Counted from the stretch's first letter, positions 1 through 64,000 are shown. The stretch is DNA of 64,000 nucleotides from Thalia democratica (GCA_965202585.1 OZ241832.1:65100001-65164000), one strand, 5' to 3'. Numbers and translations: made by a program. Notes: a model not told the origin generated them from the sequence alone.

Positions 1-1147
1 TAACTATAGACTTAGCTTAGTTTTACAAAAAGTTTTAATCTTTTGCTATTTTAATTTTTATGTTATTTTTGGTAAAAAAATGTTTTGCTTTAATTTTTTT
101 TTAATTTCGGTCAAACAGGTATATTTTTATTAGTTTATTAAACGACAACAAATACGCTCAAAATATTAAATATTTTCTCTTAAGACTTGGTGAACAAAAC
201 AACCTTTCAGATTTCGAGTTCGTTTCACCTCCTGGACTGGATACCTTTTAACGTCTTGTCAGAACAACAATAAATTGAATTTATAATTTAAACTATTTAT
301 TTGAATAAGAAGTCAAACATTCTATTTAGATAAAACTTTATTATTAACTGATGATCTATACTTTTGAGTGAAACATTGTTTGGAAAACAAAATATTAAAA
401 TATTAATAGTCAAACAAATGTTATAAATAGAGTTTACACACTTTTTAACAAAACAGAAAAGTTTTTAGGGCATATTCTAACTCTGTAAAGAAAAAGATCA
501 TAACTTTTTTTCTAAAATCTGTTCAACTTTTTGTCATAAAGATAATAAAATGAAAACATAATTAAAATAATACTTTCTACTATATGATTTTAAAATATGT
601 AATATAATTAGCTGTTTTGTGTAATACGTGGTAAAAAATGTATAATAATCTTTTAAACTATTTTAGTGATTATTCTAAAACTATAGCTTTAAGATACTTT
701 TTTACTAGTTAAAGTGTTACGGATGTTTCGTATCGAGTTTATTATTTTTAAAAGTATGCTAGATTTTTAGTGTTATTTTGGTTTCTTATAACCATTTTAA
801 AGAAAATAAAATCAATATAACATGCTTTTTTAATGTTATAAGGTAGTATTTTAACACTTTATATAAATTTAGTAACTACTTAATTAAATTACTTATAATT
901 ATTAAAATAATGAAACAAAATATTCAGTTTTAGTTTAAAGTTGGTCTGAAAACATTAATTTATGGGAAATAAAATTAATGTTATTTTTAATATACCCAAA
1001 ACGATTATAATCGTTAAGTTAATTTCTACATGTTTGAATTGATTTGATGTTCTAACAGTTATATTATTTAGGTTTATTTAAAAGTTAACTCTAAACTATT
1101 TTCAAAAATATTTTAAACAAACTTCACTTTTTTTTTTCTTTTTTTAG

Positions 1148-1192
1148 ATCTGAGCAAGGTCTTCAAAGACTGTGAAAAATGTTCTACCATTG
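1148..1192 (+). other. Candidate 45-nt spliced exon of a plus-strand transcript
   Basis: Long polypyrimidine tract ending TTTTTAG at 1147, 45 nt of sequence, then GTAATA. Exon and splice dinucleotides are identical in copy B (32154-32198). One frame is open (LSKVFKDCEKCSTI). Confidence 0.35.
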
Positions 1193-1379
1193 GTAATATG
1201 CTTTAAGTTTCAACAAAATACTTTGTTTCGGTCGATTTAAATAATGTTTTCATAAAAAAATCTCAATTTTTTGTAATTTACTACAGTTCTTAAAATTTCA
1301 ATCTCGTTTAAAATAGTTATAGAAACTAATCGTTGTTACTAGCTTATGGTAGCATATCATTAACGTTTTGTTAAGTGAA

Positions 1380-1597
1380 AAAAAATTCAAACCAGAATTT
1401 TCTAGAAGAACTTTATAAAAACACCAGTTTGTATATCGAGAATTAATTTTTTTGGCAGCATTAAGGTTCAGAGGTTAAAATTCTTTCAATTACTCTTTAA
1501 AATGAAATAAGTTAGTCTGCCATAGATTGAAGGAATCAAAGTCCACTTACCACACACATGGATATTAATGTTTTGGATCACAGTCATTGTAAGTCAA
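1380..1597. repeat. Unassigned ~200-bp dispersed module (also ~6760-6925, ~17750-17950, ~32391-32600)
   Basis: Shared string gagaattattttt..gcattaaggtt.agaggttaaaa...gtctgccatag.ttgaagg.atcaaa.tccacttaccac...attgtaagtc occurs in four places. Confidence 0.8.
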
Positions 1598-3129
1598 AAT
1601 ATGTATGAAACTTATTGCTGTTATAAAAATTAAAGTTTTTGTTCATCAATAAAAGTTCAAAATGTTTAGAATTGTTTTCTAATTTGAAATTAAATTGTTA
1701 TCATAATGATCTTCAAAGACTTTTTTCCAGAAATATTTAAACACATTTAAAATCTGTGATAAAGTATTTTTATGTTTTTAATAATTTTACTAAAAAATGT
1801 CTAAAAAAGTTTAACACAGTAGAAATTAAAATAACTGAAATTAAATTCTATTTCTGGTAAAATATTATTGAGGTCATGATTAAAAAGTAAGAAATATAAT
1901 ATATTAAGCAACTGAAACCCATTTTGACAGAATTAAATATTAATTGTTTTACTATTTTCAAGCACATATGACTGGTGTCTTTAAATAGTTAAACTTCATA
2001 AGGTTTTACTCAAATTTACAATTTATAAGTAAAGTTGAAATGTCATATTTGAAATGTTATATTTTCCACTCATCTAATATATTTTATTGCAAATAACAGT
2101 AAAACAAAAATTTAGTTAGTAATACTGGTTATAGTTTTAGCTTTTTTGTAAACTTATGCAATTATCAAAATCATATGTATTATGTGTTACAATCATATTT
2201 CAAGAATTTTTTTTGATGAATTTGAAATATATAAATATTATTGTGTAACAAAATTCAAAAATTTAAACACAATACGACAAAGTCAAACAAAATGAAGGTC
2301 CAATTATAAACTGGGTATCCATGTCAAATTCCAATTTGTTGTCAAAGCTACAAATTTAATTGTTGATATTACTATTAATATTATACTTTGATTATTATGC
2401 ATTGTCATTGAGGTGGATTGAGCTCTTCAACGTCATAGATCTTACCTACTGCAGGTGGATTGGAGTCTTTTTCAACAATTTTGAAGAATTCAATATACAT
2501 CTTTGGGCCATTGCCTGCCCTTTTTCATTTTATACATCTTAAAGCATTAAAAATGCAGATTTTAAAGTTAGCATTTATATGCTAATGTACCTAAGAGCTA
2601 CTTCTAAAAAATATTCTGTTATTCATTTCATAAATAAACATAATTTTGAATGTGAGCTATTTAAATTAATTACTAGGAAGACAATTATAATTTTTAATGC
2701 TAAGCAAAGTAGCTCATGTGGTCTCACCAACAAAAAGTGAATAAGATCTGAGCTAATTTATTTAAATTAATTGATCTTTATATTTTTGTATGATGAAATT
2801 TTTTACTACTACAGTACATTTTATTCCTGAATTATGGAAATATTTTTGCCTTACACAGTGTTTCAAGCATCTAATAAGACATAACATTGTGAAATTTTAC
2901 TGTGCATGTCAAGATGCAAGACAATTTATACTTTTTTTTTGATGTTGTGTAACTTAAACTGCTGTTACAGAAGTAAAACAATCTCTTATAAACTAATAGC
3001 CAAAATGTTAGTTTGTACAAAATAGACTCTTAAAGTTTATTAAGTGTAATTATTTTCCCACAGTTACATACAAGTTCTTCTGTTTTATCAGAATTGAAGA
3101 ATAACTTGTCAATTTAGTTTAATAGATTA

Positions 3130-3564
3130 TTAACAATGTAAAATCTGAAAAGAAAGTAACTTCAGCCCTGCAGTACCATAAAATTCTTGTCCTATTCTCC
3201 CATAACCCTTAAGCTTGCATACTGTATTCCCCGCCACTATGCTATTCGACGTCAGTATCATAACCTGATGCGGACTCAGCCCCACAACCCCTGCATTTGT
3301 ATGCACACCAGTAACGTGCAGTCTCGCAGAAGCACTGGGAGCCTCCGGGAGAGGAGGGCCCCTGACATTTTGACTGCTCGCTAAAATCGTATCAATCCCA
3401 TTATTTGCTCGAGCAACTACGTAATCGTGGGTTTCAACGAACCAGCTGATATAATCCTCCCTCGCCTGACCATCCAAATTGCTGATTCCTCTCAGGTTGT
3501 TCTCGAACTGGGTCATATATCTGCCGTTAGTAGAAGCAACTACCTTAGCACTCTCAGCTGCACT
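3130..3564 (-). pseudogene. GC-richer inserted coding fragment of unknown origin (candidate endogenous viral or foreign fragment)
   Basis: 128-aa ORF 3130-3516, open 16 codons further upstream (SAAESAKVVASTNGRY). Hand counts of two 60-nt lines gave 42% and 63% G+C, well above the background. Absent from copy B. Confidence 0.55.
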
Positions 3565-4294
3565 TTACTATAACCATTTTACTTTTCTCAGATTGTTGAT
3601 AAGATTTTACATGAAGAATAACTCCTTGTCAATTTAGTTTAATAATTTATTAACAATGTAAAATCTGAAAAGAAAACAAGTATAAACATAAACACTAAAA
3701 TGAGCTATAGTCTAATTATCCTACAAGAATATTGAATTCTGCAACTAGAATCTTTTTACTTCTGACAAAATAAGTTGTGAAAAAACCAATATATTTTTTT
3801 TGTGAAAATGTTGGTGATCTTCATTATCTTTTAAATTTGTATCATCATGAGGCTTTCTGTGAAACCATTTGGCTTAATAAATTATGTGAATTTTAATCTC
3901 AAGAGTAATTTTCATTTCTAACAAAAATACTGCTTTATCTATCAGTGTTTTTTTTTGGGTAACCTGTTTCTGATAACTTTTAACTTTTATACACCAAATA
4001 CAGTTAATATATATTTCACTTTAATTTGGGTAAAGTTACCCATTTCAATCTAAATTTGTTTCTTTTTATACTTTCTTCAAATGCCAAATATCTATATATA
4101 AGTTTTGTGTTTACTTATAAACAGAAATCTTAGACTTTCAATCAATTTATAGCTTATTTTACTGCAAATAAAAACCTTGTTATCCTTTAGTTTAGATGCA
4201 TTTTACTTATTAAATTTATTGTTTCCAGAGAAACTTTTTCACATTGTATTTAAAGCTGTAGCAGTACACATGAGACTCTAAATTAAAAAAAACC

Positions 4295-4810
4295 TCTTTT
4301 TTATTAAATATTTTAAATCTCCCCACATCCTTTCAACCTTCTGGGTATGAACCCAAATGTTAAGAGGGTGTACAAAACCTACCGCATAATTAACTTTAAA
4401 ATGAAAAATTTATTTAAATTACGCTTATTCTAGAAGTTAAGCTATTTCTTTTTATTTTTCTATTGAAGACAATTAGATTGTTAATATTATTACACAAAGC
4501 TTATATTTAAATATTATTTGAACTAATAGAGTATTAAAACTATACAACCTCAATTTAAGGTTTGGTGCCCTAGGATATAAATATGAATTTAAGGTTGCAA
4601 ATATTCAGCTAACTATAGAAACGTCATTGCTACTAAGTAAATTTTCTATATTGTTATTGGCCACAGCTGTCTGATATAATAGTAGTGCTCAATATATTTA
4701 ATAATTACTGGCTCCAACGTCTCCCTATCTGTCCTTCCCTCCATTCCCATACAATGTATAAAACGTTTACTGCTACAACTCCATACCGCCAAATACCCAG
4801 TGATGGGTCC
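4295..4810 (-). mobile_element. Merlin (IS1595/ISXO2-like DDE) transposase fragments
   Basis: Minus-strand translations WVFGG...DRETLEP...STTIISDSC (4655-4810) and HFKVNYAVGFVHP...HTQKVERMWGDLK (4295-4405) match the Merlin motifs WVFGG / GTTIISD / H.TVNH...HTQ.IER.W. Confidence 0.8.
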
Positions 4811-4829
4811 TTATAAGTGTTTTAAATGG

Positions 4830-5110
4830 TTTACTTTTGCAAGGTGATATTTTTGCTTGGAACATAACTTTTGCATGCAGGTTGATTAAATGCTTCTATG
4901 TAATACCAAATCTAACAAAAATTTTTAAGTTTTGAAAACTGAAAATCGTATAAATTATTATAACTACAAACTACCTTGCAGTGACTTTTAGTACAGCTAT
5001 AGTTTTTTATTCCTTGAAGGATTGGTCCTATTATATGTAAGAAGGTGCCCTTCGAATACTATTTTGTTGTGTTTGCCTACACAAGGTACTTCAGTAGAGT
5101 ATTTACTCTA
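4830..5110 (-). mobile_element. Intron-containing fragment, possible FLYWCH/WRKY-like zinc finger of a transposase (copies at ~14690-14790, 21430-21680, 35310-35595 and in each tandem unit)
   Basis: IVFEGHPLTYNKTNPSGNK..YRCTKSHCK (with a frameshift in an A run), then a ~75-nt GTAGTT...TTTTTGTTAG intron on the minus strand. Confidence 0.4.
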
Positions 5111-5394
5111 TAAAAGGGAAAACACTGAAATTTTTGATATATTAAAATTTTTTGAATGTATCATTAAATAAATATATCTTTCTTTGTTGAGTTTATTTAC
5201 AAACTAATTAAAAGAATGATAAAGTCTGTAATACAAAACATAACTAAAACTAGGTAAATACTTCTACAATCATGTTGTGGTAAAAACTTTGTTGATCCTA
5301 TTTCAATTGGATCCTTGTTCAGTCAAACTTGATTGTTGAAAGCAGGTTTTCATCAGATGTGTGTTTGTGTTGTTTAAAAATACCTTTTTCTTTT

Positions 5395-6700
5395 TAAAGT
5401 GCAGGATGAGAATTGTTTAGAATTTAATATATTATTTTATTTCATTATATTTTGTAAAAGAGCTACACTCTTCCATCAAAAATTTTTATTTTTAAGAATT
5501 TCATTATCAATATTTGCTTTTGAATTACCATTTTTTGTGTGCTACAAAAGATTCTGTTAGAATTTGGAAACACAGAATTAATCGCTTTAGTTATAGAATA
5601 TTCTTAATCACTGACAAAAATTAATTTGTAGATTGCCAATCTTTTAAATAAAAAGTTTCATCTGCTATTTCTTGCAAGGTTTTATCTATGGTTTCAAAAA
5701 AATAAATAAAAACATCAATTTTCAGGATGCTTGAAAAAAAATTAGTCCTATAAAAGAAGCAAGGTCTTTTGAAATTGTTTGATACAGCTTTATATTTGTA
5801 TAACTTAATGTAGTAATATAAAACTATGACCTATCAAAAGTCATATCAACTTGGATAAGACATTTATATTTTGGGTTTGTAATAAGCTTGTATAGGCCAT
5901 AAAAACTATCTTTAATATATAATACGACAGATTACAATTCTTACTTACATTTGTTTAAAATGTTTCTTTTGAACAAAGTCATCATTACCAGCCTTTTTAC
6001 TTAGATTACAGATTTGTTCAACCACATTTCTGTCAACCAAACGGTTTTTTTTTGGTTTTTTCCCTACTCCCTTTGTTACATCTGTACATTCCTCTTTTTA
6101 TGTCATAACTGAATTTAAAAGTATTTGTAAGTTTAATGATATTTATATTTAATAAAAAAATTATTGAGTAGTTTGTAAAACAAGTAATTACTCGCATGGT
6201 TTGCTGCATTTTGGACACAGAGCTCCTTTTGACAAAACTCTGTGTTTTTGAAGAAACTTTCTGGAGAATTCTGGGCGTCAAATAATACTATTCTTATTAA
6301 GGGGTTGTCTATACAAAAACAGTTCATAATAAAATTATACTTTAACTCTATGGCTTCTTACTAATTAGTTTTTATCTTTAAAAGTGTAGAGAAAAGTTAT
6401 TTGTATTGGTACTATGTTACCAAGCAATGTTTTTAATTTTTATAAGTTAATGTAGTAATATAAACTCTTCTTACCTATCGAAAGTCTTATCAACATGGAT
6501 TAGACATTTATAATTTGAATTTGTAACAAGCAAAACAGGTCATATAGACTATTCGTAAAATATAATACAAAATAAGGCAATTCACTTTTACATTTGTTTA
6601 CAATGTATATTTGCACAAAGTCCACATTACCAGCTTTTTACTTTGATCACAAATTTCTTTGACCATATTTCTGCCAACCAAACGGGTTTTTTTAGTTTTT
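5395..6700 (-). mobile_element. Mutator/MULE transposase family 2 catalytic-core fragments
   Basis: ...SVVLY...IQVD(K/M)TFD..FYITTLSY (first Asp) and FVSD[Q/*]EYSITKAINSVFPNSNRIFCST (second Asp plus CxxH region), with stops and frameshifts. A second first-Asp piece lies at ~6420-6700. Confidence 0.8.
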
Positions 6701-7039
6701 TTTGTATGATAATACATATCATGTTTAGTAATAAACTTATCTATAATCAGATATTTCCAGTTTGTTTATTGAGAATTATTTTTTTGGTAGCATTCAAGTT
6801 CACAGGTTAAAACTACATCAATTACTCTCTAAAATTAAATAAGTATGTCTGCCATAGGTTGAAGGTATCAAAATCCACTTACCACATGGGTATTAATATT
6901 TTTGCTGATAGTAATTGTAAGTCATGTTATTATTTCTATTATTTTTCTGTTCGAGATGCACAGTATGGATCTTGAGCAGGTGCATTGTCTTTTATAGTTA
7001 TTTTCATCTTATGTTTTAAATATTCTTCTGTGTAAAATA

Positions 7040-7950
7040 TGTTCGCATAATCTCCTTAGTCTTATTGACTCTCCGAATACAATTGGTTTGTAAATGGAGC
7101 ATGGATGGTGTGACTTTCCATTTACAAATACACAATTTTTGCTGTTGGTTTTATATAGTTTTTTACATAAAAGCTGCCCTTTTCTGTTTAGTCAATGACG
7201 TGGTTGACATCCAAAATATTTCAGTTTAGTATATTGCAACATTTTTTATAAGGTTTTGGAACATGGTGGTAATTCTAGATAAGAAAGTGTTGCCTAAAGC
7301 CCAATTCATTCTTTTTGGTGTTTCTCTTTTTTTTTGTTTCAACTTGTTCTGGGTTTAATTTATGAGTTTTAAATGTTGGGTAGATTTGTCCTGGGTTATC
7401 ATTTTTTAAATATTTAGCTTTTTGGCCTGTTATTTTTGACAGTATTCCACTTATGTTAATTTTTTCCAATTGTGTGAAATAATATGATTTCATCTATTCA
7501 ATAACCTTCATCACTTATAAAAACAGTTGGTTATTTACCTTCTGCTTCACTTTTGTATTTGAAAGTGTTTGTCAGTCAATTAGGTAAAATGTTGTTTACT
7601 ACCACATTTTTTACTTGAACTTTTTAAAATTTGGACAGTTTTCAATCTAATACTCCTGACTTTTTTTTATTTATGACATGTTGTTGTATGGAACTTTATT
7701 TTGGATGTTAATAATTTTCATTACATTCAAATTCAAGTATAGTTTGAATGTGTTCAACAGGATTCTAGTTGATGAATTTATTTTAACCACATATTTTATA
7801 TTTAGAAAATTCCAAATATTTGTAACATCTCTTTTTGACTTGAAGTATTTGTGGTACTTGTGGTAAAATTCAACATTTAAATTTCTTTGTTTTCATTAAC
7901 ATTTGTTTTTCAAATTTATAAATATCACGTTATCAAATTTATAAATATTA
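7040..7950 (-). mobile_element. Penelope-like retroelement family A fragment (RT N-terminus and thumb, internally deleted)
   Basis: NPGQIYPTFKTHK (ORF 7275-7493) and FVNGKSHHP.SIYKPIVFGESIRLRRL, both typical PLE RT motifs. Confidence 0.8.
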
Positions 7951-9230
7951 CTGCTATCATCTGGTGCTTCCATAAAATTCACCAGAAATATGCTTATAAG
8001 TCATATATTTGTAATTCTTTTATAACAACTATTGCTTGAAAGATATAGTCAAACCATACATAATGATTTGTATTGTCTTATATTTAAAGGAAAATGTTTT
8101 GGAAACTCATGCCTTCTAAGTTGAGGAATATTTTAGGAGTTACACTAGTTTGTGAAGGTTTTCAAGAAATGTTGTATATATATAGTTCTTTCATTTCCTA
8201 CCTAAGAGTTGAAGAAATTCTTTAACATGTTCTTTTTAAAAATTTTCTGACATCACAGAGTTTTGTTTCACACTCTAAAAAAATATAATTTAATTCAAAA
8301 TCAATAAAACATTTTTGTTACATAAATCTAATAATACCAAAGTTTTTATTGACAAACTTTTGTTTTTAAGGTAAAGTTGATAAATTTAATTGACTATCAT
8401 GGTAGTTTCTGTTTTTTTATGGTCAACTTTGAAGTAGCAATTAGTAAAATTTCAACTGTTTGTCTTTCACTTTACTATTTTAATATTATAACTTCAAGCA
8501 CAGCTTTTGGTTGGTTGGGTACCATATTCTCAGTTTTTATTTTTATAAACCTTTTGCAACTTATTATTAACAGATTATTGATTTTAGTATATAACTTTTT
8601 AGTACTACATATATTATACAAAAATCTAAGACAGGATTCATTCAAAAACATCTTTTATTGGAGCAAAGAACAAATAAAATATATTTTGGCTAACACTTAT
8701 CAACTACTTTTGTTAGCAACTAATTTTAAGATTAAATATTGAGTAAATAAATAGATAGAGGTTACATTACGAAAAACAAACAATTAACAAATTGGCATAA
8801 TTAAGCAATAATTAATTAGAAATTCACAATTCATAACTACATATTTATAAATATTTAATCAGGAATTTAAGTAAGATAAGCAACAATAACAAAACCAACA
8901 ATAAAATAAGCAACAAATTTAAACAAAAAAGAAATTCATAACATCTTATAAAGATTAGAATTATAAACGTATTGTTGCTTGCACAAATTAGGTTTAAACG
9001 TTTTTATAAATAAAGATTCTAAACCACTTAAGGTGATAATCATTACGAGCTTTACTTATAATTGAAAAATTACTATCACTATAGTTCTTTGCACAATCTG
9101 AATTGTTTAATAAGTGTTCGGCAATCGCCGATGATATTATTCATTTTGTTTGTATTTTATTTCACAAAGTTTTTCAAAACTATACTAGTAAATTAATTTT
9201 CAAGTGGTAAATGTATAATGAATTTGAAAA
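7950..9230. repeat. Unassigned degenerate segment duplicated at ~49310-50560
   Basis: Collinear similarity by eye. Broken minus-strand frames plus an A-rich (UTR-like on minus) stretch at 8750-9000. Confidence 0.75.
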
Positions 9231-9479
9231 AAAAAAACATAACCAGGTAGTGTAAAGGTTGCCTTTATGTTTACAATAGATTTTTTGATATTTTCAAATT
9301 GACAAAACAGTAACTGTCTTAGTTTTAGGTCTTGCAGTTTCCTTTACAGCTGACTTAATTCAAAAGTTAGTGTTTTCTACTAAATTAATTAAAACAGGCT
9401 TGTTTAGCTTTAAATAAATGTATGGTTGTAAAACATATCTGAAAATTAAGTCCAAACTTTCATTATTATACCTTTTTTC

Positions 9480-10760: not shown

Positions 10761-10779
10761 GTCAACTTAACGGTCTGAC

Positions 10780-12050: not shown

Positions 12051-12129
12051 TCCATAAAATTAACCAGAAGTTTGATTTTAATTCATATATTTGTAATTCA
12101 TTTATAATTTATATTATTTTTGAAAATCA

Positions 12130-51079: not shown

Positions 51080-51170
51080 TGTTTGTTTGTACCTCAATAA
51101 CCTGTACCCCACAGTTTATGCCGTCAAGTTGTGGATTATGCTTTATGCCTACTACCTTAAACTTCTTAAA
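51080..51170 (-). pseudogene. Possible second Ulp1/C48 protease catalytic-Cys fragment
   Basis: KHNPQLDGINCGVQV resembles Q.DG.NCGV. Confidence 0.4.
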
Positions 51171-52150: not shown

Positions 52151-54619
52151 GATAATCAAACAATAACAATTAATGTTTATTTTTGAGAGCGAACAACGTA
52201 TTTAATAAAAAGTTTATTTTGAAATGTTCTTATATAATAAAAAATACGTACTACATGATCCTCATTTCAGTACGACTTTACAGACTTGGCTTCTTTGTTT
52301 GTTTTGTTTATACAAAAGGCAATCTCAACTTGTTCATCTGCTGGATTGTCTTCTTTAAAAGGATCAATACTATCATCAAACACTTGATGATTTCTCACGT
52401 AGAGAATTTTGTTATCACAAAGGTTTGATCGTGTTAAGAAAAGTAATAAATGACTAAAAATTATTACTAATAATCTATACTTCTTCGTGCTGCTTCTATA
52501 AGGCTTCCAATTTCCCAAACTTTTCTTCTTTTTGTGAAATCATTTCTAGCTTCTTCTCGATTCGGATGGCATAATTGGTGATTTTTAAGATAGGAAAAAG
52601 GGCTTCTACAGCTTGGTTGTAGAAGCTTCAGTTTTACATTTATATTGTAGGGCGCAATTATTTTGCTTCTAAAACTACTTGTACAGCTGTATGATATTTT
52701 AATTGTGTTGCGGTTAAATATTTTATTATATAAGTGGTTTTCATCAAAGCACTGAAATTATAAAATGATCTCCAAATATGACCTACATAGTTGAGTTTCC
52801 AAATTTATGAGAATGTTTTTTCAGTTGTTTGTAATTCAACAGAATCCCGAAAATGCATTTTGCTGGTTATTGTGCCTGAAAATCTGCAGTAAGCTAATAA
52901 TTTTGCTTCACCAAATACACCAACAATCTCATATTGTAAACCAAAACAAAATTAAAGTTCAGGCTTAGGTTCTGTTTTGTATTAATAAAGCTTCTTTTAG
53001 GCACAACCTATATGTTATTGTTCCTGGTTTAGATTTTTTTCTTTGTATTATTTTCAAACTCAGTAGTTCTTGTTTTTATTTTTTGATTTGTGTATTAATT
53101 TTGAAAGCGGTTGCTTGTTTGTACTGTAGGTAATTACTTTAACATGATTAAGTATCTGTTACTGATCTTTCTTATAATTTCAACAGTACTCCCAGAGCAT
53201 CAAAACTTTATAAAATTTCTGATTTCATAAAAACAATCAAAATTTTTCACTGACTCACTTTTCTGACAAACTATGTTTAAGGAAGAATATTTTCAACAAG
53301 CTTTATTTTTTTCAATTGATGCTGAAAAAACACATTTTTACATTTCTTTACAAACTCACACTGTACAAACTCTACTATAAATTATCCAAGTATTTTGTTA
53401 AGAATACAGTTGGTGTTGCATATTAGTAATTTTATCACCAAGATGGTTTAATTTTGTTAGTTTAACATCAAATCATACATCTAACTTACTTCAATCATCT
53501 TCATCATTTCCCATAATAATAACATAGCAAAAAGTTAATAACACTTTTTCTTGCTGTTGCATATTTTGAAACGTTTGTTTACAAGCTGTCTAGTAATTTT
53601 ACCAAGATCATTATTTGTGAAAGTTTTTCTAAATTTTTTTTTCAACGTGTAAGGCTCTTGATTTTTCACCATTTATTTATTAAGATTAAAAATCTTGTTT
53701 TTGTTTATATTAACAGTGATCATTTTTGAAATACATGGCTTTAAAGTAGTATACTATTAATAATTTTAACTAAGTACTTTGAGTTACTAGGGTGATATCA
53801 AACTTTGTGGTAATACTTCATTCTTTCAAATGATAAGTCAGGAATAGAAAGCGGTTTGCTAGTTGAAAAGCGGTTATCAGTTTGAGGAAAAAGAGGCATT
53901 GACGACTATGCATTAACACATGGCATCAGGCATGAAGAAGCCACTGCCATGTCAAAATTTTTAGATGTTTTTGTCCAAATTTATCATATCATACTATTGT
54001 TTGGCATGTGAACACTATTTGAAGTCTTTGTGTAAATAGACATCAGACTTTTTAGCTCGTTGCGAGCAAATTCTTTTGAGTTTATTTTTTGATTGGGATT
54101 TAAGTTCCTCACAGCTTTATCTAGGCCACGGTACTTTGTAGTATATAGACAATTAAGGCTTTTTGCTTGGATGTAAGAATATATCCAAATTTCTTCATTA
54201 AGTTTTTAAGCATGATTATAATGCTTTGAACTTTTATTCAATATATTTACTTCCAAAGGTTATAAAGTGGTGACTTTTGCTATACTGACATTAAAAGTTG
54301 ATGCATCCACAAGTAATCCACGGAATTCAAAACTTTTCAATGTCTATAAACTGAATTTCTACAATCTTCATAATCAATCCAAATTTTTTAAAGTGTATGT
54401 TCCTGTGATAGTCTTGATTTTAGCATTTGCGCTTTCTGCTGAAATATTGGTGAGTGGTTTTTTATTTGGGAGTTTGAAATTAAATAGTTTGAAATAAGAA
54501 GGAGTTAATGAAATATTATGAGATGCAACACTGTTCATCCTGGTAACATAGTCCACTGACATGATCCGTAGTAGGTTTTATTTTGGTCCACTTTGAAATA
54601 GCAACTAGTAACTTTTAAA

Positions 54620-54900
54620 ATGTTTGTCTTGGAAGTTCACTACTTTAATATTATTGGAAGGAAAATTGAGGCAACAAAGCTAAAAAAATTCAACTTTACA
54701 ACTATTATCACGTCATTATGTCATTACTTATAGTTATAAAGTTATTTTCCTGGTGGCTGTTTATAACCAGGCAGTTTTTACCAGTGTTGTACTATTTTTA
54801 TTACATTAGCCCAAATTGTAATATCAACAACCTGCTGTGATTCTAACCATCTTGTGTCAAAAAATAGTAAAGGAATTGTTCTTTGAACCAGTTTCATATA
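54620..54900 (-). mobile_element. hAT-like transposase fragment (copy B)
   Basis: Paralog of 19700-19980 with the TRWLESQQV motif. Confidence 0.55.
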
Positions 54901-55059
54901 CATTATATTTTCAAGTTTCACAACTTTTATTTTTATAAATTATCTTATTTTCAATTTCGCATTCAATTCAATACATTGTTGTAGACTTCATATCTGCTCA
55001 AGGTTTTTTTTTATGTAATTACTTGGGGTGGTTTCTCCTAACAACTCTTTTATTTTATT

Positions 55060-55700
55060 GAATATTTTGTTGTCTTCTTCAGCATCTTTTTAGATTTTGT
55101 TGTTAAAGTTGATATTAGAAAAATTACAGCTTGAAATTTTTCTGATATAAGTTTGATTACAATAATCTGCATAGTCACTCTTGTGATACAGTTCAGTTTC
55201 ATAAATAAATTTTCATATAGAGTTTAAGAATTGAATTGTCTTTTTATTTGTACTTTTTGTGAAAAATTAATGTTTGATTTTATTAGATTGTAAAATATGT
55301 TCTTGCTTATATGTAAATAGCATCTAAACTTTAAACTGTCAGGAAATATTTTGTATACTAAGTTTATTAGAGCTTGTTCTCCATCTTTCACAAATGATAG
55401 TTTAGACAAATCAAATTCAGGAAATAACTTTGTGTTTATATTTGTTTTAATGAAGTTGAAAAAATGATCGTAGTCCTCTTCTTAAGCATTTTTATGTAGA
55501 AAACATGGATCTTAAAACACAGGATTAGAATTATTATCTCCCAAGATAACTTTGTTGTTTTTAAAATTCTTAGGAAGTGTGCTCCTAAGTTAGTCCTGCC
55601 TACACTTCAACAGATCTAAGATCTTTTGAACGTGTTATCATGTTCAGAAACTGATCTTCTGTAACAAGGACAAAAGAAGAAACGTTAGTATGTACATTAT
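55060..55700 (-). mobile_element. MULE family 1 fragment (copy B)
   Basis: ORF 55224-55409: FVKDGEQALINLVYKIFPDSLKFRCYLHISKN. Confidence 0.85.
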
Positions 55701-56589
55701 TAAATGCCAGGTTATTAAATTTTACTATTTATTTACTATAACCAAAATTTTAAAACTTATTATTAACAAATGTGATATTTTCAATGTTTCGTTTATTGCA
55801 GTATTGTTCACATTGCATAAATAAAAACTTGAAATTAAAATGATATATATTTGTCGTTCATTTTGCTATATTTGTTGTATTGTGTGTTGCTATACGTTTT
55901 TTAAGCTGATTGACACTTAGTCCAATGTATATTTTTGATGAATTGTCTGTTTTTATTGTTGCCTGGTAAATAACATTTTTTGCCCTACATTCTCCTCCTT
56001 ACAGGGGGCATGTTTGTTTCTTTCTGCAGGTGTTCATTAACCAAAATAGGTATACATAGCTTGTTTTTCTAAAAGCTGTTCAAAAGTTTAGATAACTTTC
56101 CTTTTAACTTTGTTAAAACAGTTATGCAGGTAGTGTTTTTTCTCTAGATGCTCTTCTTTGAAATATTCTAGCTTTTGTAGTGTCAGACATCACAACTTTT
56201 TTGATAAGATTAACTGCTTTACTACCAAAAAAAAAAAACGATCTACAATTGTGATTACGCATTTTTTTCTATGTTATGATAAAAAAGTGTTCTTTTTAAA
56301 TCATACTTTTTACCAAAAATAAGTTAAAAGTCTTACTTACCAGTGTAACATATTTCAACAAAATCAACTGCTTTACTACAAAAAAGTACCCTGAAAAACT
56401 GCAGTAACCACGTTTTATTCTATCTTCAGCTTCTCTAAAAGTTAATTTTTTTACATTAAAATATGTGCTACATCTTTTGAACTAAGAGTTTTTTAAAGTA
56501 ATTTTAAAGAAATAACTTGTTTAAAGAAAATTGTTTTTGTTGTATTTTTTAAAAACCGTCTAAGTAGCCGTATTTTTTCATTATTGTTT

Positions 56590-57030
56590 CATATTCATCT
56601 TTTATCTTTAAAAAGTTTCTTCTTTACTAGATCGTTTGTTTAAGCGTTGATTAGTTATGTAAGGAATTTGCTTTATGATATTTTTAGGATGGCTTGATTG
56701 TTTGTTGACAAACATAATTTTTGCGTTTTGCTTTTTATAAGGTATAAAAGAGATATCATTCAAGTTGAGCTTCACATCTTGGAAGTCAGTTATCACTAGT
56801 GGCAATTCCACAATGACTCGTAACCCTATAGATTTGGAGAAGGCATGATTTTGTATTTTTGGCTTCTTAACTTTAAAGCCAGAAGAGTTATATAATACAG
56901 CTAGACTTTTGCCTCTTTACAATTCAACTCTAATTAAACCAAAGATATATTTTGTTCTATATTTAGCAAAATATGTTTTATTTATTTTTGTTCTATATTT
57001 GAGCAATCTTTTAAACTTATTCTGAAGAGA
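56590..57030 (-). mobile_element. Penelope-like family B RT fragment (copy B)
   Basis: ORF 56608-56811 DFQDVKLNL..ISFIPYKKQNAKIMFVNKQSSHPKNIIKQIP. Paralog of 22130-22545. Confidence 0.85.
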
Positions 57031-57300
57031 CTTGATTGTTTGATCATCTGTAAAGTGTTCAATAGAAGAGGTCCAAACTGAGTTCGAATTACTCCAACAT
57101 GATAAATGTATTTTTCTTACATATTGCAACACTGTTTTGATTTTGCAAATGTTTCTGAAATTTACCTAGCCTTGATCTTTTATAAAATATAGTGGGATTT
57201 TCTTTGCCTGGAAGCTTGATTGACCCTGAGGTATAAAAACCTATATACAACTACTTGTTTCATTTTATTTTCGATAGTTGTTTTTTGGCTGATCGAGTTT

Positions 57301-57836
57301 ATTTCACATCGTGAAGACATTCTCAGCAAACTTCCTTGAAAGAAATTTGATTTGGAAGCTGCTTTGCAAAAATACCCAGTCATGTACTGGGAAAACACCG
57401 ATCTTGTGCAAGAAGTGGAAAGATTCAACAAGTTAGTTGTTAAGTTATTTGTAAAACATTGTTTAATTAATTATTAAAAATAAGTTTTTTTATTTACTAG
57501 TTTAAATTATGTACAAAACTCCTTATTGTTTATTATTTGTTACCAGTCTTTGTTGTATGTATAAAATGTTTATAAAATATTGTATTAAATTAAATTGTCA
57601 CAACTTTTAATTATTATAATGAAAATTGTAATGTTTTTAGATAATCTTTAATTTTTTTAATGTTTTTGAATTGTTAACAGTTTGCTGAGAGTAATCCGAG
57701 TGACGCTAATAAACCTGAGGAAGGCGATCAGAAGTTTGGTCGTCATGAACAGCGAGTTGGAAGCCCTGGTTGGAAAGTCTCATAATAGGGAAAGTACCTG
57801 ATGTGTGGATGAAGCGCTACTAACTTGAAACCTATG
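57301..57836 (+). pseudogene. DNAH12-like: Axonemal dynein heavy chain C-terminal domain fragment: two exons (57301-57431, 57681-57836) and intron
   Basis: Exon 1: [38 protein letters not shown]. GT at 57432, AG at 57679-57680. Exon 2: LLRVIRVTLINLRKAIRSLVVMNSELEALVG(fs)SLIIGKVPDVWMKR..NLKP. The spliced RFN-N-LL frame matches DNAH12/7/3-type sequence from memory. Contains a stop and frameshifts. Confidence 0.85.
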
Positions 57837-58329
57837 TGTATTTATTTTAGTCGTATTAAATCTTTGAATATAAAACTAAGCACTTTGAATTGTTGTTTTA
57901 TTTTGCCCGAATAGGTATAAGGATCAGGTATATATATATATATATATTAAAATCTTAAATAGTATTAAATATATTATATAAGATTTTTAAAAGAGGTTAC
58001 TAATTGTCACTAAAAGTATGTAGAAAATTAAATCTAAAAATTGCACCAAGTATGTACAACAAATTGACCTTATAGAGTTGTTCAACATAAGTCTGCATCA
58101 TTTAAGAAACAATATATTTCAACAGGCATGGTTCGGCCGTTTTAAATATCATTTAAAAAAGTTAAGTTTTATCAGCAAGTCTACTGACTACAAATAAAAT
58201 CTTAAAGTTGTAAAAACCAGCGCTTCATACTACCAATTAGTTCAGTCTGAGTTTTTCTAGTTAGTCAAAATAAATGCACTATATATTTTCATTAACATTT
58301 AAAAAGTAGATCATTCAATTAAATTGTCT

Positions 58330-58577
58330 CAATACCTGAAACTACAGTTCCGTGTTACAGTTCTTGAAAGTGTCAAGTCAGATACAATTTTTAAATACAA
58401 ATTTTTCGTTATTGTAATAGGTTTTGCCCCTTTGCAGATATTTAAAAACATGTTTGCCCCCATTTTAGCCATCGCCTGTTTAAAAGTCAGTTACCATTTT
58501 TGGTCATACTGATTAACACCCCTAATGGTGAAAAATAATTTTAAAGGGGCAATACTGCCTATTTTTTGAATCCCTGC
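58330..58577 (-). mobile_element. Possible hAT-type non-autonomous element end
   Basis: The minus strand begins CAGGGATTC and has repeated GGGGCAA/TTGCCCC subterminal motifs. No second end found. Confidence 0.25.
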
Positions 58578-60109
58578 AGTATTAAATTAATATAGTAAAG
58601 GAAGTGTAGAAAATAAAGAAAAATTATTTAGAGATATATCTTAAAAAGCTTTAGATTAGTCTAAACACAACAAACTTAGTCTCAATTAATTACAAACTAT
58701 AATACCAAAAAAATTTTAATCTGTGTTTAGCGTATAAAGTTGTGTTTCAAGCTAATAATATAATCAAACCGAAGATTTTTATGGATATTAGTTGCCTGTT
58801 GTAAATTTACAGTTATTTAGGAACAAAGATATAAACTTAAGAAGCCTTTCCACTTATATTAGTATACGCATTGTTTTAATATTATATCTTAACATCCATG
58901 TATATTAGTATGATTTACGGCCTAATTAAAATCGATTACTTCAGAAAACTGTTGACTTGAGGCTTTTAAGATAAAATGAATGTCATTTAAAAGATTTGAA
59001 GGTTACAGAACAAGGTATTGCACATAAATTTACAGTTTAAAAATAATAAAAGTAGTGCTTTTTACTGGGTGATCATTAGTTTACTATTTTAAGGTTACAA
59101 TAGTTCAGTCTCAGAACTTAAAAAAAAACATAATATTTAACATAGCTAAATTGTGTACTGTTGTTTATAAAGACAATATAAATCTTTTTAGAATTTTTAA
59201 TTAAACGTTTGTTATACTCTGTTTATCTTTAAATATTTATCATGTTTGTAAGAAACTTATTATTTAAAATGTTTCAATGAAAATCGCTGAGCTTTTACTC
59301 AATTTATATTATACATGTTAAAAGCTTTTTTATCACAAGTAAAATAATTACTTACTACAGTGACATTTTAAACAAAAATTTGCTTTTCCAGACAATAATA
59401 GTAACTAATAATAATAAATAAAATAAACTCAAAACGAAAACTGTTTATACAATAATTCTTTTAATTATTAATATTAATAATAATAACTTTTGAACATAAT
59501 ATAGAGTAGATCAAAAATATTTCCATATTCCAACGCTTATCAAATGCAAGCACATACATTAATTAAATGTACACAGAATTATGTTTGGAAAACTGAATAA
59601 CATTAATGTATATCTTAAAAGTTATTTTAAGTATTTTTAGCCAAAACAGTCTATTATGTGTCATAAATAAAATTTAATACCTTAAAACTCTTACTTTAAC
59701 GTTGAACAACGAACTCTATATAACTATTACAGTGTTATTTAAAAAAGAAATATTTAGAAGTTAGTGACTTTAGCTCTTTATTTATGACAATTTTGTTAAA
59801 GAAGCCAACCAAATACAACACTTTACTAGACATAGTGACATTTCAATTTATATATCTTTTCAATTGATCTTGCTTATAACTTATTTTTTCTTGTTTAAAA
59901 TCTATGCAAAGTTTTATTAACTTTAGGGTAAAATACTTTTTCTCAAATAAGTCATTTAAAAACGACTTATCTTGAAAATATGATCACAGACAGTACAACT
60001 TTTTGATTAATTAAACATTAAAACGATTCAAATAACTTTGTAGAAATTAGAAACTATAAAGTATAACAAAAACTTGCTGCTTAGGTAAAAATTCTTAAAA
60101 TATAACTTA

Positions 60110-60340
60110 ATTAAAAAATTTTTGTTTCTTTATTTTTACTAAAACGAAACAAACTATGTTCAATAATAATTAATTAACTATACATTGTATTTATGAACAT
60201 CCTTAAGTGACGTAACAGACAAATACTAATGTTTATTATTTATATATATACAAAGATGAAACAAATATGTAAAGTAAAAAAACTTAGTTCCCTTAAAGAA
60301 TTCTCTTGAGCACTGAAAAAGTTTTTTTAGAAACAGAACA
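60110..60340 (+). promoter_or_regulatory. TGACGTAA element copy
   Basis: aagtgacgtaacagacaaa, core at 60208-60215. Confidence 0.35.
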
Positions 60341-61059
60341 ATTTATCTTTATAACTATTTTAGTTTATTTATTAGTTACTATATAAAATTCTTAAACGTA
60401 AATTGAAAAAACTAAATGTATAAATAAATAAAATAATAATAATGATATCCACATACCTATTGATTTGAAATATTTTTTTAATGTTATATATTTAGATTGA
60501 TGAAGACTAAATCTACCTTCAGTAAAAATAAACATTACATTTTTAAACAACGTCTACTTCTATTGTTTTACTTTCTATTTAAGTTTAATTAAATTAAATT
60601 TTAGAAAATAAAATTGTTTACATTTTTCAAATTTATTTTTGAAATCAGTAATTGTATCCAACAAACTAGAAGTGTAACTAAATAATTTTTTCTTTATTAA
60701 ACTATTTTACGGTAATTTATTACTAGAACAGTTTTATTAAGGTTGTAAAAGAAAAATTGCTAGTATTTGCACAAAGTAAAAAAAAATCCTTTAACTTGTT
60801 CACTTGTTTAATAAAAACAACGTTAATGTTTCAATTGAAGTGAAATTAAATTTTCAGAAGAATATATGATCACGAACCATCACTTACAAACGCAACGATA
60901 AATACTTGGTTGATATTACTAAAGATTGAGTAATTTTATTTCCACTTTAACTTACATAGAAAATAATATATTTCTACTACTGATTATAAGAATATTTAAA
61001 CAAATTAAAAGTTTAAACATTTATATAAGGAATTTGCATTAGATTATTTTTTAAACTAT

Positions 61060-61260
61060 TTTTGAACTATTTCAAAATACACATTATGGCAAATAAATTA
61101 AGTATTACATTCATTGTATTTTTGAACATCCTTTAGTGACGTAATAAACAAACGGTAATGTTTATTGTTTGTATATATATATTAAAATAATATAGTTGTT
61201 GAATCAAGGTGCTCTTGTAGCTTCCTTTGAAGAATTTGCTTGAGCACTAAAAAAACCTTG
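61060..61260 (+). promoter_or_regulatory. TGACGTAA element copy (counterpart of 24530-24715)
   Basis: ctttagtgacgtaataaacaaacg, core at 61137-61144, followed by (TA)n and caaggtgctcttgta. Confidence 0.35.
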
Positions 61261-64000
61261 AATAAAAACAATGACAATTTATATCTAATTATCGAGCATG
61301 ATCACTTTATTGTTATCATTAAAACATTATTTAGTCTAATATGTAGACGAAATTATGATTATCGTTAGGGGTCTAGCATTGGTGCCTTCGGAATTTTTGT
61401 TCCTGACTGTCTGATTGATCTATCCCACCCACACCGCCCTAAAACTTCTCAATTTAATTTATTTTTATTGTGTAAGCTAGTGTTTGTGGTTAAGTCACTA
61501 AAATTTATTTTTTGCTCAACATTTCTTCAGTTAAAAAGTTAAAAAATTAATTTAATGAAGTTGCATTATTTTGTTGATTCCTTGCAAACTTGTTTTTCAA
61601 CAAACTTGTAGTGCATTGTAACTGAAATATTAAAAACTGAATCTAAATATAAACTTTACCTGAATGCTTGCGTTTGTAAAAGACGTCAGAATAAAATACT
61701 TTTGTTGATGAGAGCTTTTCTTCAGTCATTTTCATTGAAAAACTTATAATAATCTTGAAACATCAAAAGAATTAATCACAATAGTGATTTAAAGCTATCA
61801 CATTGGACCAGTAAAAAGTAGTTTTTGTTAATATTAAGCAAATATGTACTTTTGTATAAAAGCAAGTATTTTTAAGCTTAGTTTCTGTATTTGTTAAACA
61901 TTTTATAATTCATACTTATATATCATTCAAATCATTTTTATCAAAATTAAGTAGTATCCATGAGAGTCTACTAATTGAAACTTAAACGCTTTAGTTTATC
62001 TTTAAAAAAAAATAGTGCATTTTACTTTATTTATTTAACCCTAACATAAAATGTTTCGTTACTTAATTGGCTTAAAACGTGTGTATAAGACGTTATCATT
62101 AAAAAATAAGTTGTTCATTTATTATTTAAGTTGTTTTTGTATAATTTCATTAAAAATGTTTAACAAATACAGAAATAAACTTAGAAATACTTTTAAAGTA
62201 TATAATACTAAATGTTAACAAAAAGTGTTTTTACTGGTTTAATCTAATAACTTTGAATCACAGTAGTGACTAGTTCTGAATATGTTATGAGTTAAAATTA
62301 AAATGATGACAAAATATAAACTTTTTTTTATTTATAAGAAACTTTATTAGTACTCAAGCAATTCTTTTTTGGAAACTTAAAGATTAACTTATGTTAATTT
62401 ATAAGTACTTACAATTGTTGTTTTTTAGGAGTTTATTATTGAAAATGTTTCAACAAAAAACAGAAACTTAACTTAGAAAATAGTTGTTTTTATATAAAAA
62501 TACGTTTTTACTAAATCTTAACTAAATGTATTTTTTACTGATTTACTGCGATAACTTTGAATCACTGTAGTGTCAAATTCTTTTTATGTTATTAAGTTAC
62601 TAAATTACAACGTTTTATTGTACTAAAATATAAATTTTAACCTAAAATTTAAGAAAACAAAAATACGTTAAAAAGCAGTATTAAGTATATTTAAAACTTA
62701 TTCAATAAAACTTAAGTTACAAAAAGTGTTTAAAAATCTACTATTTAGTTTCTATTATCTTTAATTAAAGTACATTATACTGATAGTAATCCTAAACTGG
62801 ACAAAGAGCTAGTTACTCAAGTTTAACTAACTACATTTTATCTTATTAAATTATGAGTAGTCCGAACATATTAAAGAAATGTTTAAGTTTTATTCACACA
62901 TTGTTACAAATAATCTTCATTCGTAAATTATTCTTTACTAAATTTTATTAAACTTACTAATTTAATCCATGAAAATACTGTAAGTTAAACTTAGCTCTTT
63001 ATGAAAAAAACTAAAGTTGTAGTTCTACTTTTTAAACAGTATATACAAAATAGACAATGCAATAACCAAATATTTTATTCTCGTCAGTGGTAGATGGCAA
63101 TAAAGGAAAAAACAAACTTCAACTTGTATAGTAATATTAGCAACCATCATAGACAAATAATAATTACATACAAAGTTGATGACACAAAATTAATCAAAAT
63201 ACTTAGTATTATCAGAGTTAATTAAGTACAAACATATAAACACAAACAAAAGCGCTGAATAGATAAAGCAACACCATAACCCTATTACTTTTGCCTACAA
63301 AGGGTAGGTTTTCTATTCCAAATATTTACAGCCTCCATTTTTACACTTTTTTCGAAAAATGTGCACATCAGATTGCGAAATCTAAGTTATAACCAATAAC
63401 AAGTTTAGATTTAGTATAAAGAGGAGTAACATTAGAAATGGTATATAATCAATGTAATTCTAATAACTAAGTTTTAACTTTAGCCAGCAAATAAAACTAG
63501 TTCTAGTTTTAGTCACTTTAAAACAACAGTTTTACTGTTTAGTTTTACTTTTATCAATAAACTAAACTAATTTAAAAAAAAACTTTTGGTTTTATTTAAA
63601 TAAAAACATAATTTAACTGTTTAGTTTTAGTTTTACTCGACTAATAAGAGAGGTTTTGGTATAAGTAACTACATGATTTAATTATTCAACACTGTAGTTT
63701 TATTTTTTTTTTATAAAATTACTATATCTGTTAGTTTTAGTTTTAATCAGCTTACAATAGATGTTTTACAGTAAAGTTTTAGTTTTAGTGGCTTTATTAC
63801 AGTGACTTAACTACGTTTTCAATTTAAACTTCAGTTTTATCTGCTTAACATACTTTTAGTAACTCTATGTTTAACTCATATTACTTAAATCAATTTTATA
63901 TTTGTTATCAATTTACATCTATGGTTTAAATAAAGAGAAAATTATAAGAGTTGAAATGAATTATAAAATCTTTTACAATGTTTATGAAAAAAAAACAGTA

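Follow-up and report, generated by a model that had tools for sequence, protein, structure and literature searches.

A probable direct duplication of Penelope-like element debris in Thalia democratica, with a young left tract

The DNA analysed here, hereafter the window, is a stretch of 64,000 nucleotides from Thalia democratica (GCA_965202585.1, OZ241832.1:65100001-65164000). It contains two neighbouring copies, A and B, of a stretch of ~31-37 kb that is built mostly from decayed Penelope-like retrotransposons. The arrangement is best explained, with a probability that we put at roughly 0.7, as an old direct tandem segmental duplication into two copies, followed by recent homogenisation of the left 4.7 kb.

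Results

Two collinear copies in direct orientation

Self-BLASTN aligned window positions 1-5113 with 31014-35599, and the recurrence of the window start at 31014 proposed in a first-pass annotation is thus real. The two segments of this match (1-3155 with 31014-34157, and 3612-5113 with 34094-35599) are ~98% identical when gaps are counted, and 99.0% and 98.1% identical over aligned sites. All of the block pairs listed in that annotation were recovered on the plus strand with an E-value of 0, namely 9240-11250 with 47233-49246 (90%), 7861-9236 with 49245-50556 (88.5%), 19338-21377 with 54280-56275 (90.4%) and 22119-22641 with 56610-57131 (83%), the last having a weak extension (22811-23026 with 57120-57300) at 70%. 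Further collinear pairs, absent from the earlier list, match 5370-5968 with 45237-45809, 12119-12494 with 51790-52166, 13265-14315 with 52170-53243, 23662-24215 with 60385-60949 and 24387-25991 with 60946-62560. The anchors between A and B, comprising the young tract, pieces of repeat J and of a tandem array, two copies of repeat family U (U1 with UB1 and U2 with UB2), blocks Z and P and the spacer, all lie in the same order and orientation. With weak matches included, BLAST alignments between the copies cover about two thirds of A and slightly more than half of B. The apparent reordering of 7861-9236 and 9240-11250 does not reflect a rearrangement; it arises from a head-to-tail tandem of family U (~4.1 kb) in copy A.

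Both copies had been described as ending in a paralogous AT-rich spacer. The paralogy is confined to ~23.05-25.99 kb and 60.0-62.56 kb, where BLAST and alignment place the shared spacer at 23050-25991 in A and 60015-62560 in B with 12-29% divergence, and the homology stops at 25991/62560, beyond which identity in a global alignment drops to random level. An extension to 26422/62989, obtained by BLAST with relaxed scoring, was overturned by the same alignment. The spacer at 23050-25991 is made of old short repeats in both orientations; a satellite was ruled out, as TRF shows only tiny microsatellites. Neither 25992-31013, an AT-rich stretch of 20-23% GC, nor 62561-64000 has a partner within the window, and 62561-64000 bears no resemblance to 25992-27400.

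Divergence classes and the young tract

Computation of divergence for each block confirmed the view that the blocks are of very different age, with significantly heterogeneous classes of 0.86%, 7.3% and 12-29%. The lowest value belongs to the young tract, from 1 to ~4630, in which A and B differ at 36 of 4180 aligned sites. Six middle blocks from three repeat families have a pooled divergence of 7.3% and are homogeneous (chi-square 4.16, 5 df, p=0.53); the segment 4750-5113 fits this class (6.0%, p=0.42). The right-hand blocks diverge by 12-29%. Tests against the six middle blocks set the young tract apart (p=1e-52), and likewise the right-hand blocks (p=5e-5 to 4e-67), so that the homogeneity of the middle does not extend to the left tract or the right-hand blocks, and more than one event or rate is indicated.

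The change from the young to the older class falls inside one unbroken alignment, with 36 differences in 4180 sites before ~4630 and 22 in 364 after 4750 (Fisher p=1.6e-10), and only two 2-bp indels are present across the step from 0.86% to 6%. A sharp change of this kind in a continuous alignment, at ~4630-4750, is the expected trace of gene conversion or unequal exchange, in agreement with the mechanism first suggested for the locus, and it points to a conversion or unequal-crossover boundary rather than a transposon end. The young tract occupies 1-4700 in A (change-point 4630-4750) and 31014-35200 in B (change-point at ~35113-35236). The near identity originally claimed for the first ~4.6 kb holds to about 4630-4750, interrupted in A by a 445-bp insert and a second copy of its 63-bp flank. 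Since the match starts at base 1, its left end is imposed by the edge of the window and does not mark where a unit begins; the tract's left edge and the flanks of the window lie outside the 64-kb view. No LTR or TIR of its own was found for the young tract, only chance AT-rich matches, which rules against its being a transposon with terminal repeats.

One contig from Tara Oceans, L006, contains a 658-bp portion of the young tract that is arranged differently and mixes A-type, B-type and 5 private variants. This contig is the sole hint of further copies, and given its existence the young tract could belong to a mobile or multi-copy repeat.

Blocks Z and P and the Penelope-like elements

The recognisable debris is mostly remnants of Penelope-like elements (PLEs) of the Hydra clade on the minus strand, accompanied by fragments of Ulp1, MULE and LTR elements. 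A PLE profile was built from 22 relatives of 606-792 aa, and pieces of the window match it with E-values of 1e-24 to 1e-6. All 11 of the 11 profile matches with E<0.01 lie on the minus strand, as do the Ulp1, MULE, LTR and P0007-like pieces.

The best preserved remnant is block P, a decayed PLE on the minus strand. In copy A (19338-23026) it contains pieces of a putative PLE-type reverse transcriptase (RT) at 22757-21888, including the motif GLYRDDGLAV, and a GIY-YIG domain at 20851-21102 (23.5 bits, above the Pfam cut-off of 22.6), and is interrupted by a J copy at 21435-21697. The GIY-YIG domain lies downstream of the RT pieces on the same strand, and the same order is found in copy B and in the relative P0046. 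Copy B of the block (54280-57300, minus strand) retains RT and thumb at 56611-56916, GIY-YIG at 55861-55998 and a weak MULE-like piece at 55227-55481. P matches the profile only from about position 334 onward, corresponding to a 5' truncation. Block Z, also on the minus strand, holds a PLE fragment at 13684-13854 (profile positions 512-547) in copy A (12119-14315), where it is interrupted by 770 A-only bp (12495-13264), and another at 52470-52757 in copy B (51790-53243).

A search returned 3843 relatives, the full-length members being ~720 aa with weak RVT_1 matches, one of them with a C-terminal GIY-YIG match; P relatives occur in other DNA at 80-86% identity. The relatives used for the profile score 20-22 bits on Pfam RVT_1, short of its cut-off of 29.6, and YRDD and DKT motifs are present in their alignment. 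The relatives located by word search lie on ENA contigs, those sampled being from marine or Tara Oceans metagenomes; the only relative with a name is a chimeric gene model of Ptychodera flava, and exact-pattern scans of JGI metagenomes gave no match. An alignment of 12 full-length relatives shows D117 K118 followed by a consensus T, an RW motif, C584-N-C586-x5-C592, C681/C684 and C711-x-H713, with no conserved cysteine between VVY and YIG. Hydra-clade PLEs are described as having DKT in place of DKG, RW(K), a CxCX5C linker, no CCHH in the GIY-YIG domain, and CxxC/CxH near conserved E and N (Craig et al. 2021, PMC8557442). The motifs match this description; they were read in the relatives, the window copies being too broken to show all of them. 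No hammerhead ribozyme was found with Rfam at gathering score or at E<=1; the copies are truncated and decayed, so that this absence is weak evidence. Pfam returned only the GIY-YIG, a sub-cut-off Ulp1 and a weak MULE domain, and profile searches of NCBIfam and PDB returned none.

Repeat family U

Five copies of family U, all on the minus strand, are present in the window at similar mutual divergence. Copy A carries U1 (5370-9236, alpha subtype, with a weak PLE thumb match at 7012-7191), U2 (9240-12115, beta subtype, truncated, with a weak PLE thumb match at 11078-11293) and U3 (17098-19226, alpha subtype), which lies inside a 5-kb A-only stretch (14316-19337). Copy B carries the fragment UB1 (45191-45818), the positional partner of U1, and UB2 (47233-50556, beta subtype), the positional partner of U2, which is without ~700 bp present in all three A copies. 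The first two copies abut head to tail, U1 reaching 9236 and U2 beginning at 9240. PLEs typically show partial tandem (pseudo-LTR) arrangements and 5'-truncated copies (PMC8557442), and the U1-U2 junction fits such partial tandems; the match of family U to the PLE profile is weak (E 0.003-0.7).

U2 and UB2 share one structural subtype against U1 and U3, with 105 informative sites versus 1-2. Within copy A the U copies diverge by 4-11%, about as much as A from B. Pairwise distances among the copies are star-like, only the alpha and beta subtypes being informative, and consequently a transposition burst is not separable from local duplication for U alone.

Copy-specific insertions, repeat J and a 1167-bp array

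Copy A alone carries a 445-bp insert at 3159-3603 (minus strand) with 47% GC against a background of 26%. It is flanked by a ~63-bp direct duplication (3096-3158 and 3604-3670), of which B has a single flank copy, and its 144-aa frame is 54-64% identical to an ORF beside a Ty3/gypsy-type pol on a Tara scaffold (L002). A solo-LTR-like fragment of ~110 bp at 5159-5268 (minus strand) matches the short LTR of the retroelement on L002 with 92-98% identity; it too is confined to A, and the site is uninterrupted in B. The A-only stretch 14316-17097 (minus strand) contains an Ulp1/C48 peptidase fragment at 15175-15429, just below the Pfam cut-off (20.0 versus 20.7 bits), and a PLE C-terminal fragment at 16639-16854.

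Repeat J (plus strand) forms the end of the shared left block at 4820-5153 in A and 35304-35650 in B. With ~93-94% identity between them, these two copies belong to the old 7% class; further copies at 14683-14793 and 21435-21697 match at 81-89%. Copy B alone contains a tandem array (35470-42472, plus strand) of 6.0 units of 1167 bp, each composed of a J tail, a B-only insert of ~420-470 bp, 127 bp in common with A 5268-5394, and 443 bp that are B-only. A 95-aa frame on the minus strand of the ~420-470-bp insert has no match in Pfam. The units differ from each other at 6-16 positions (0.5-1.4%), from which the array would be of about the same age as the young tract. The gain and loss of cassettes first ascribed to the copies is seen in that pieces of 0.1-7 kb have been gained or lost in both; these are decayed transposon fragments and not functional modules.

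Composition of the window

The window has a GC content of 26% and a CpG observed/expected ratio of 0.47, with CA/TG in excess. A RIP-mutated fungal isochore was ruled out by this CpG depletion with CA/TG excess, and by a CpA+TpG ratio of 1.08, which indicates no depletion. No ORF of >=150 aa, tRNA, Rfam match, N run or gap was found in the 64-kb window. The window is AT-rich, CpG-depleted, gene-free animal DNA consisting chiefly of decayed transposons.

Discussion

In the preferred reading, a unit now of ~31 kb (A) and ~36.6 kb (B) would have been duplicated in direct tandem, with B occupying 25992-62560 and A beginning ~5 kb to the left of the window; on the two-copy model, 25992-31013 would form the left-hand portion of unit B, with its counterpart in the sequence preceding the window. 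The middle of the unit (A 4.75-21.4 kb) has diverged as one piece to 7.3%, and insertions and deletions in both copies, together with one tandem amplification, then followed. The left tract, of at least 4.7 kb, was homogenised recently (0.86%), presumably by gene conversion, or by unequal crossover between misaligned units. The excess divergence on the right could stem from an older first duplication whose middle was overwritten by a second exchange, from low-complexity sequence decaying faster, or from the pairing in part of non-orthologous copies of old short repeats. Several observations tell against a two-copy duplication. Few element-element junctions are common to A and B, and the case accordingly relies on the order and orientation of the blocks and on their equal divergence. 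The right-hand blocks also look significantly older, which calls for an extra assumption. On the same side weigh the U copies within A, which differ from each other about as much as A from B, the unseen flanks, and the other arrangement of part of the young tract on L006.

The two units in view might instead belong to a macrosatellite-like array of at least three, in concerted evolution by repeated unequal crossing-over, with A a hybrid from a crossover at ~4.7 kb, sharing recent descent with B in its left part and with a unit to the left of the window in its right part. The divergence step is exactly the signature of such a hybrid, the existence of three divergence classes points to exchange on more than one occasion, the B-only array shows the locus to be prone to tandem amplification, and the 658-bp portion of the young tract on L006 is a third version, in which A-type, B-type and 5 private variants meet. 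This contig may, however, derive from another individual or a dispersed repeat, and the dissimilarity of 62561-64000 and 25992-27400 runs contrary to a third in-register unit after B, which is a weak argument. The tandem multi-copy family of >31 kb initially proposed is supported as regards two direct adjacent units; only these two are seen, and a two-copy duplication fits them equally. We regard the larger array as rather unlikely, at well under half the probability of the two-copy duplication. More doubtful still is a variant in which the macro-repeat locus evolves in concert and its one-way transposon remnants would suit a duplicated uni-strand (piRNA-type) small-RNA cluster growing by unequal exchange. 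Having all recognisable fragments on one strand does recall uni-strand piRNA clusters of the flamenco type, or antisense transposons in a long intron, a likeness drawn from sequence alone in which several fragments do not count independently, having arisen by tandem or duplicated copying, and to which a preference of PLEs for inserting in the same orientation may also contribute.

It is very improbable that no large duplication took place and that insertions of the same families (U, Z, P, J and spacer repeats) fell independently into the same order by chance, the young tract being two recent copies of a mobile element. The blocks are indeed transposon-derived, PLEs insert in tandem and nested, the five U copies have similar mutual divergence, P relatives at 80-86% identity exist elsewhere, and part of the young tract is known in another arrangement. 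Against this, order and orientation agree at six anchors or more (~1 in 720 for order alone), three families sit at the same 7.3% (homogeneity p=0.53), U2 and UB2 are of the same structural subtype at matching positions, and the homology continues beyond the young tract, itself devoid of terminal repeats, at the old level of divergence. An assembly artefact, in which a false tandem was assembled from two haplotypes or from two distant repeat copies, or in which the young tract was put in the wrong place, seems just as remote. Repeat-rich regions and PLE tandem structures trouble assemblies (PMC8557442), and the 99% tract and 99% array are readily misplaced sequence; yet the window is free of N runs and gaps, outside the young tract A and B are 7-29% diverged and separated by numerous indels of 0.3-7 kb, far beyond allelic variation, and the alignment passes from the 0.86% into the 6% zone without a break.

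As in known tandem segmental duplications altered by conversion or crossover, the copies are direct, adjacent and tens of kb long. They share a collinear, evenly diverged backbone and a much younger tract that ends abruptly inside continuous homology, and each carries indels of its own. The present case departs from these in having no gene, only transposon debris, in only two copies being in view, and in a right part more diverged than the backbone. Macrosatellites and higher-order tandems similarly have a large unit in direct tandem, nested tandems (here U-U at ~4.1 kb and the 1167-bp array) and patchy homogenisation, whereas only two units are found here, 7-29% diverged over most of their length and differing in length by ~5.6 kb. 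The likeness to Hydra-clade PLEs (Craig et al. 2021, PMC8557442) lies in P remnants that carry, on a single strand, putative RT pieces and, C-terminal to them, a GIY-YIG, in relatives of ~720 aa on contigs of 2.6-3.9 kb with DKT, RW, CxCX5C, no CCHH and CxxC/CxH, in 5'-truncated copies and in the head-to-tail arrangement of U1 and U2. The window copies differ from such elements in being broken by stops, frameshifts and insertions, in yielding no hammerhead ribozyme and, for U, in the weakness of the profile match.

No function is apparent for the structure itself, which is best seen as a by-product of recombination between repeats; it reflects the ordinary evolution of a repeat region. Its significance beyond annotation is little, and for annotators and assemblers a mis-assembly is worth checking at the 99% tract and the 1167-bp array. 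The locus provides a small, clean example of how repeat-rich DNA grows, as segments are duplicated, homogenised in patches whose boundary can be dated, and amplified locally in tandem. It also adds Hydra-clade Penelope-like elements to an AT-rich marine genome that is also present in Tara Oceans metagenomes.

Collinearity of the two copies

Block pairs between copies A and B, two neighbouring direct copies of a stretch of ~31–37 kb, were checked by self-BLASTN of the window. The first-pass annotation had the window start recurring at 31014, and this is borne out by alignments of 1–3155 with 31014–34157 and of 3612–5113 with 34094–35599 (99.0% and 98.1% identity at aligned sites, respectively). 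Every other coordinate pair it had given was also recovered, in direct orientation: 9240–11250 with 47233–49246, 7861–9236 with 49245–50556, 19338–21377 with 54280–56275 and 22119–22641 with 56610–57131. Further direct pairs from the same search (5370–5968 with 45237–45809, 12119–12494 with 51790–52166, 13265–14315 with 52170–53243, 23662–24215 with 60385–60949, and 24387–25991 with 60946–62560) complete a chain in which all anchors are direct and their order is identical. The blocks had been described as reordered, and this does not hold. The single apparent reordering is an effect of repeat family U (~4.1 kb), of which U1 (5370–9236) and U2 (9240–12115) lie head to tail in copy A, so that the single fuller U copy of B (47233–50556) aligns partly with the end of U1 and partly with the start of U2.

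The near-identical left block (hereafter, the young tract; A 1–4700, B 31014–35200) is real, but window base 1 is not established as a unit start: the match is bounded there by the window, and more of the young tract may lie to the left. Both copies had also been said to end in a paralogous spacer; homology is present there but stops at 25991/62560, beyond which identity in a global alignment falls from 82–83% to the level of unrelated AT-rich sequence. Segments 25992–31013 and 62561–64000 are therefore partnerless within the window, and the simplest geometry places unit B at 25992–62560 (36.6 kb), with unit A, of ~31 kb, extending from ~5 kb outside the window on the left to 25991.

Divergence classes and the edge of the young tract

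The proposal that the blocks differ in age is supported by divergences of 0.86% at the left (36 differences in 4180 sites), 7.3% in the middle and 12.4–29% at the right. The middle value is pooled from six blocks of families U, Z and P (P being a decayed Penelope-like element, PLE), which cover ~7.3 kb of aligned sites and are homogeneous (chi-square 4.16, 5 df, p=0.53). The left tract and the right-hand blocks (22119–22641, 12.4%; 24387–25991, 14.9%; 23662–24215, 29%) each depart from this class (p between 5e-5 and 1e-67). The higher right-hand divergence could reflect an older first duplication, quicker decay of low-complexity DNA or mismatched old copies of short repeats.

Differences between A and B are spaced one per 100–400 bp as far as 4629, followed by 22 within 4750–5113 (change-point at A 4630–4750, B ~35113–35236; Fisher p=1.6e-10 for the step), and the boundary is crossed by just two 2-bp indels. 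Divergence past it is 6.0%, indistinguishable from the 7.3% class (p=0.42), so an old homology runs beneath and beyond the young tract. Such a step inside an uninterrupted alignment agrees with the unequal exchange or gene conversion that had been suggested; it is what gene conversion leaves behind, or an unequal crossover yielding a hybrid unit. A recently inserted element ending at the boundary does not fit, since the old homology continues past it, and no terminal repeats belonging to the young tract were found. A repeat of ~200–300 bp, which marks off the alpha subtype of U (U1, U3) from beta (U2, UB2), lies at 6688–7031 and 17659–17955 and is present too inside the young tract at 1394–1596 and 32400–32601.

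Pieces private to either copy

As had been proposed, each copy has gained or lost pieces. Copy A alone carries a 445-bp insert (3159–3603; 47% G+C versus 26% in the background) flanked by a 63-bp direct duplication (region 3096–3670) that is single in B. The two flanks each differ from the single B sequence by one change of their own, and this speaks for insertion in A with a target duplication of unusual length. A frame of this insert shares 54–64% identity with an unnamed ORF of Tara scaffold L002. The ORF follows closely on the 3′ LTR of a Ty3/gypsy-type element, and the LTR of that element corresponds to a second A-only piece, solo-LTR-like, of ~110 bp (5159–5268; site intact in B). The LTR-like and ORF-like (3172–3561) pieces are collinear and oriented as on L002, where they are ~100 bp apart versus 1.6 kb in the window; the intervening 1.6 kb is common to B at ~98% (99.9% to 4629), B having neither piece. 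Also private to A are 770 bp within block Z (12495–13264), 5 kb containing U3 (14316–19337) and a copy of repeat J within P (21435–21697).

In copy B alone, an insert of ~420–470 bp precedes a tandem array (35470–42472; 6.0 units of 1167 bp), which starts ~230–360 bp right of the change-point interval. Units differ at 6–16 sites (0.5–1.4%), which makes the array similar in age to the young tract. Each unit holds a 95-aa minus-strand frame, intact in four of the six, for which there was no Pfam match. Other B-only stretches are 42473–45190, 45819–47232, 50557–51789, 53244–54279 and 57301–60014; the second contains a 21-bp minisatellite (46552–46624, 3.5 copies) encoding a PEEGI-type repeat within an 89-aa minus-strand frame.

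Composition and transposon fragments

The window has 26% G+C; CpG occurs at 0.47 of its expected frequency and CA and TG are in excess, a signature of CpG methylation in a eukaryote and not one of fungal RIP. It contains no N runs, no ORF of at least 150 aa and no tRNA that could be found, Rfam returned nothing at its gathering score or at E≤1, and the sequence is repeat-derived, non-coding DNA.

On the minus strand, P retains reverse-transcriptase pieces (22757–21888, including GLYRDDGLAV) followed by GIY-YIG (20851–21102; 23.5 bits versus a Pfam cut-off of 22.6). A search of 1.84 billion representative proteins with P0005, an intact relative of metagenomic origin that has a locus 80–86% identical to the window in DNA, returned 3843 relatives, the full-length ones of ~720 aa. 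Among eight of these scanned, RVT_1 was weak in three and GIY-YIG lay near residue 610 in one. An alignment of 12 full-length relatives displays DKT, an RW motif, a C-x-C-x5-C linker, and CxxC and CxH near the C-terminus, with no conserved cysteines inside GIY-YIG. This combination is exactly the diagnosis that Craig et al. 2021 (PMC8557442) give for the PLE Hydra clade, most of whose known members come from cnidarians; hemichordates, molluscs, echinoderms and arthropods contribute a few families. A profile from 22 longer relatives (606–792 aa) gave 11 matches to the window with E<0.01, all on the minus strand, in both copies of P and of Z, at 16639–16854 and, once and weakly, in U2; fainter hits to the same profile region come from three other copies of U (E 0.02–0.7). 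The U1/U2 junction agrees with the partial tandems that, with 5′ truncation, are typical of PLEs (PMC8557442). No hammerhead ribozyme was found in the window with Rfam.

An Ulp1/C48 cysteine-peptidase fragment (15175–15429, minus strand, A-only; Pfam E=7e-4, narrowly missing the cut-off) was probably left behind by a DNA transposon with such a domain, and a weak MULE fragment lies at 55227–55481 on the minus strand. Across 5000–23000 and 35000–57500 there is an excess of T on the plus strand (AT skew −0.1 to −0.18), and every recognisable transposon-derived coding fragment (PLE, Ulp1, MULE, the LTR piece and a frame resembling protein P0007) lies on the minus strand. Same-orientation nesting of PLEs, location in a long intron or a uni-strand small-RNA cluster are possible reasons for the bias.

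Origin of the two copies

Equal divergence across unrelated families, in common order and orientation, is as predicted by one duplication of the middle segment. Independent transposon insertions with no macro-duplication do not predict it, and are very improbable; we give assembly error just as little credence. The reading we prefer, with a confidence of about 0.7, is that a transposon graveyard underwent tandem segmental duplication; the middle segment would have been duplicated as a single event, later indels would have arisen in both copies together with the 1167-bp amplification in B, and a recent conversion or unequal exchange would have covered at least 4.7 kb at the left.

A variant of this duplication, in which the copies belong to a longer array evolving in concert, is considerably less likely, and here the evidence comes from outside the window. 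Two contigs from Tara Oceans and other ENA data (L004 and L005) match the array unit at 99% identity, so the source species or a very close relative lives in marine plankton; two exact-pattern scans of JGI metagenomes gave no match. In a third contig, L006, the ORF part of the array unit runs directly into young-tract position 2406/33405, an arrangement absent from the window. Over 658 bp, L006 has three variants in common with A, six with B and five private, indicating a third version of the young tract, or at least of part of it. This contig is the sole support for more than two copies, and could equally be another individual or a dispersed repeat. Its junction (L006:1–823 against 33405–34061 and 38003–38152) gives one continuous 81-aa frame, P0184, which in the window stops at the junction point; this suggests that the window holds two separated parts of one ancestral element or gene. 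The observation itself is real but ordinary.
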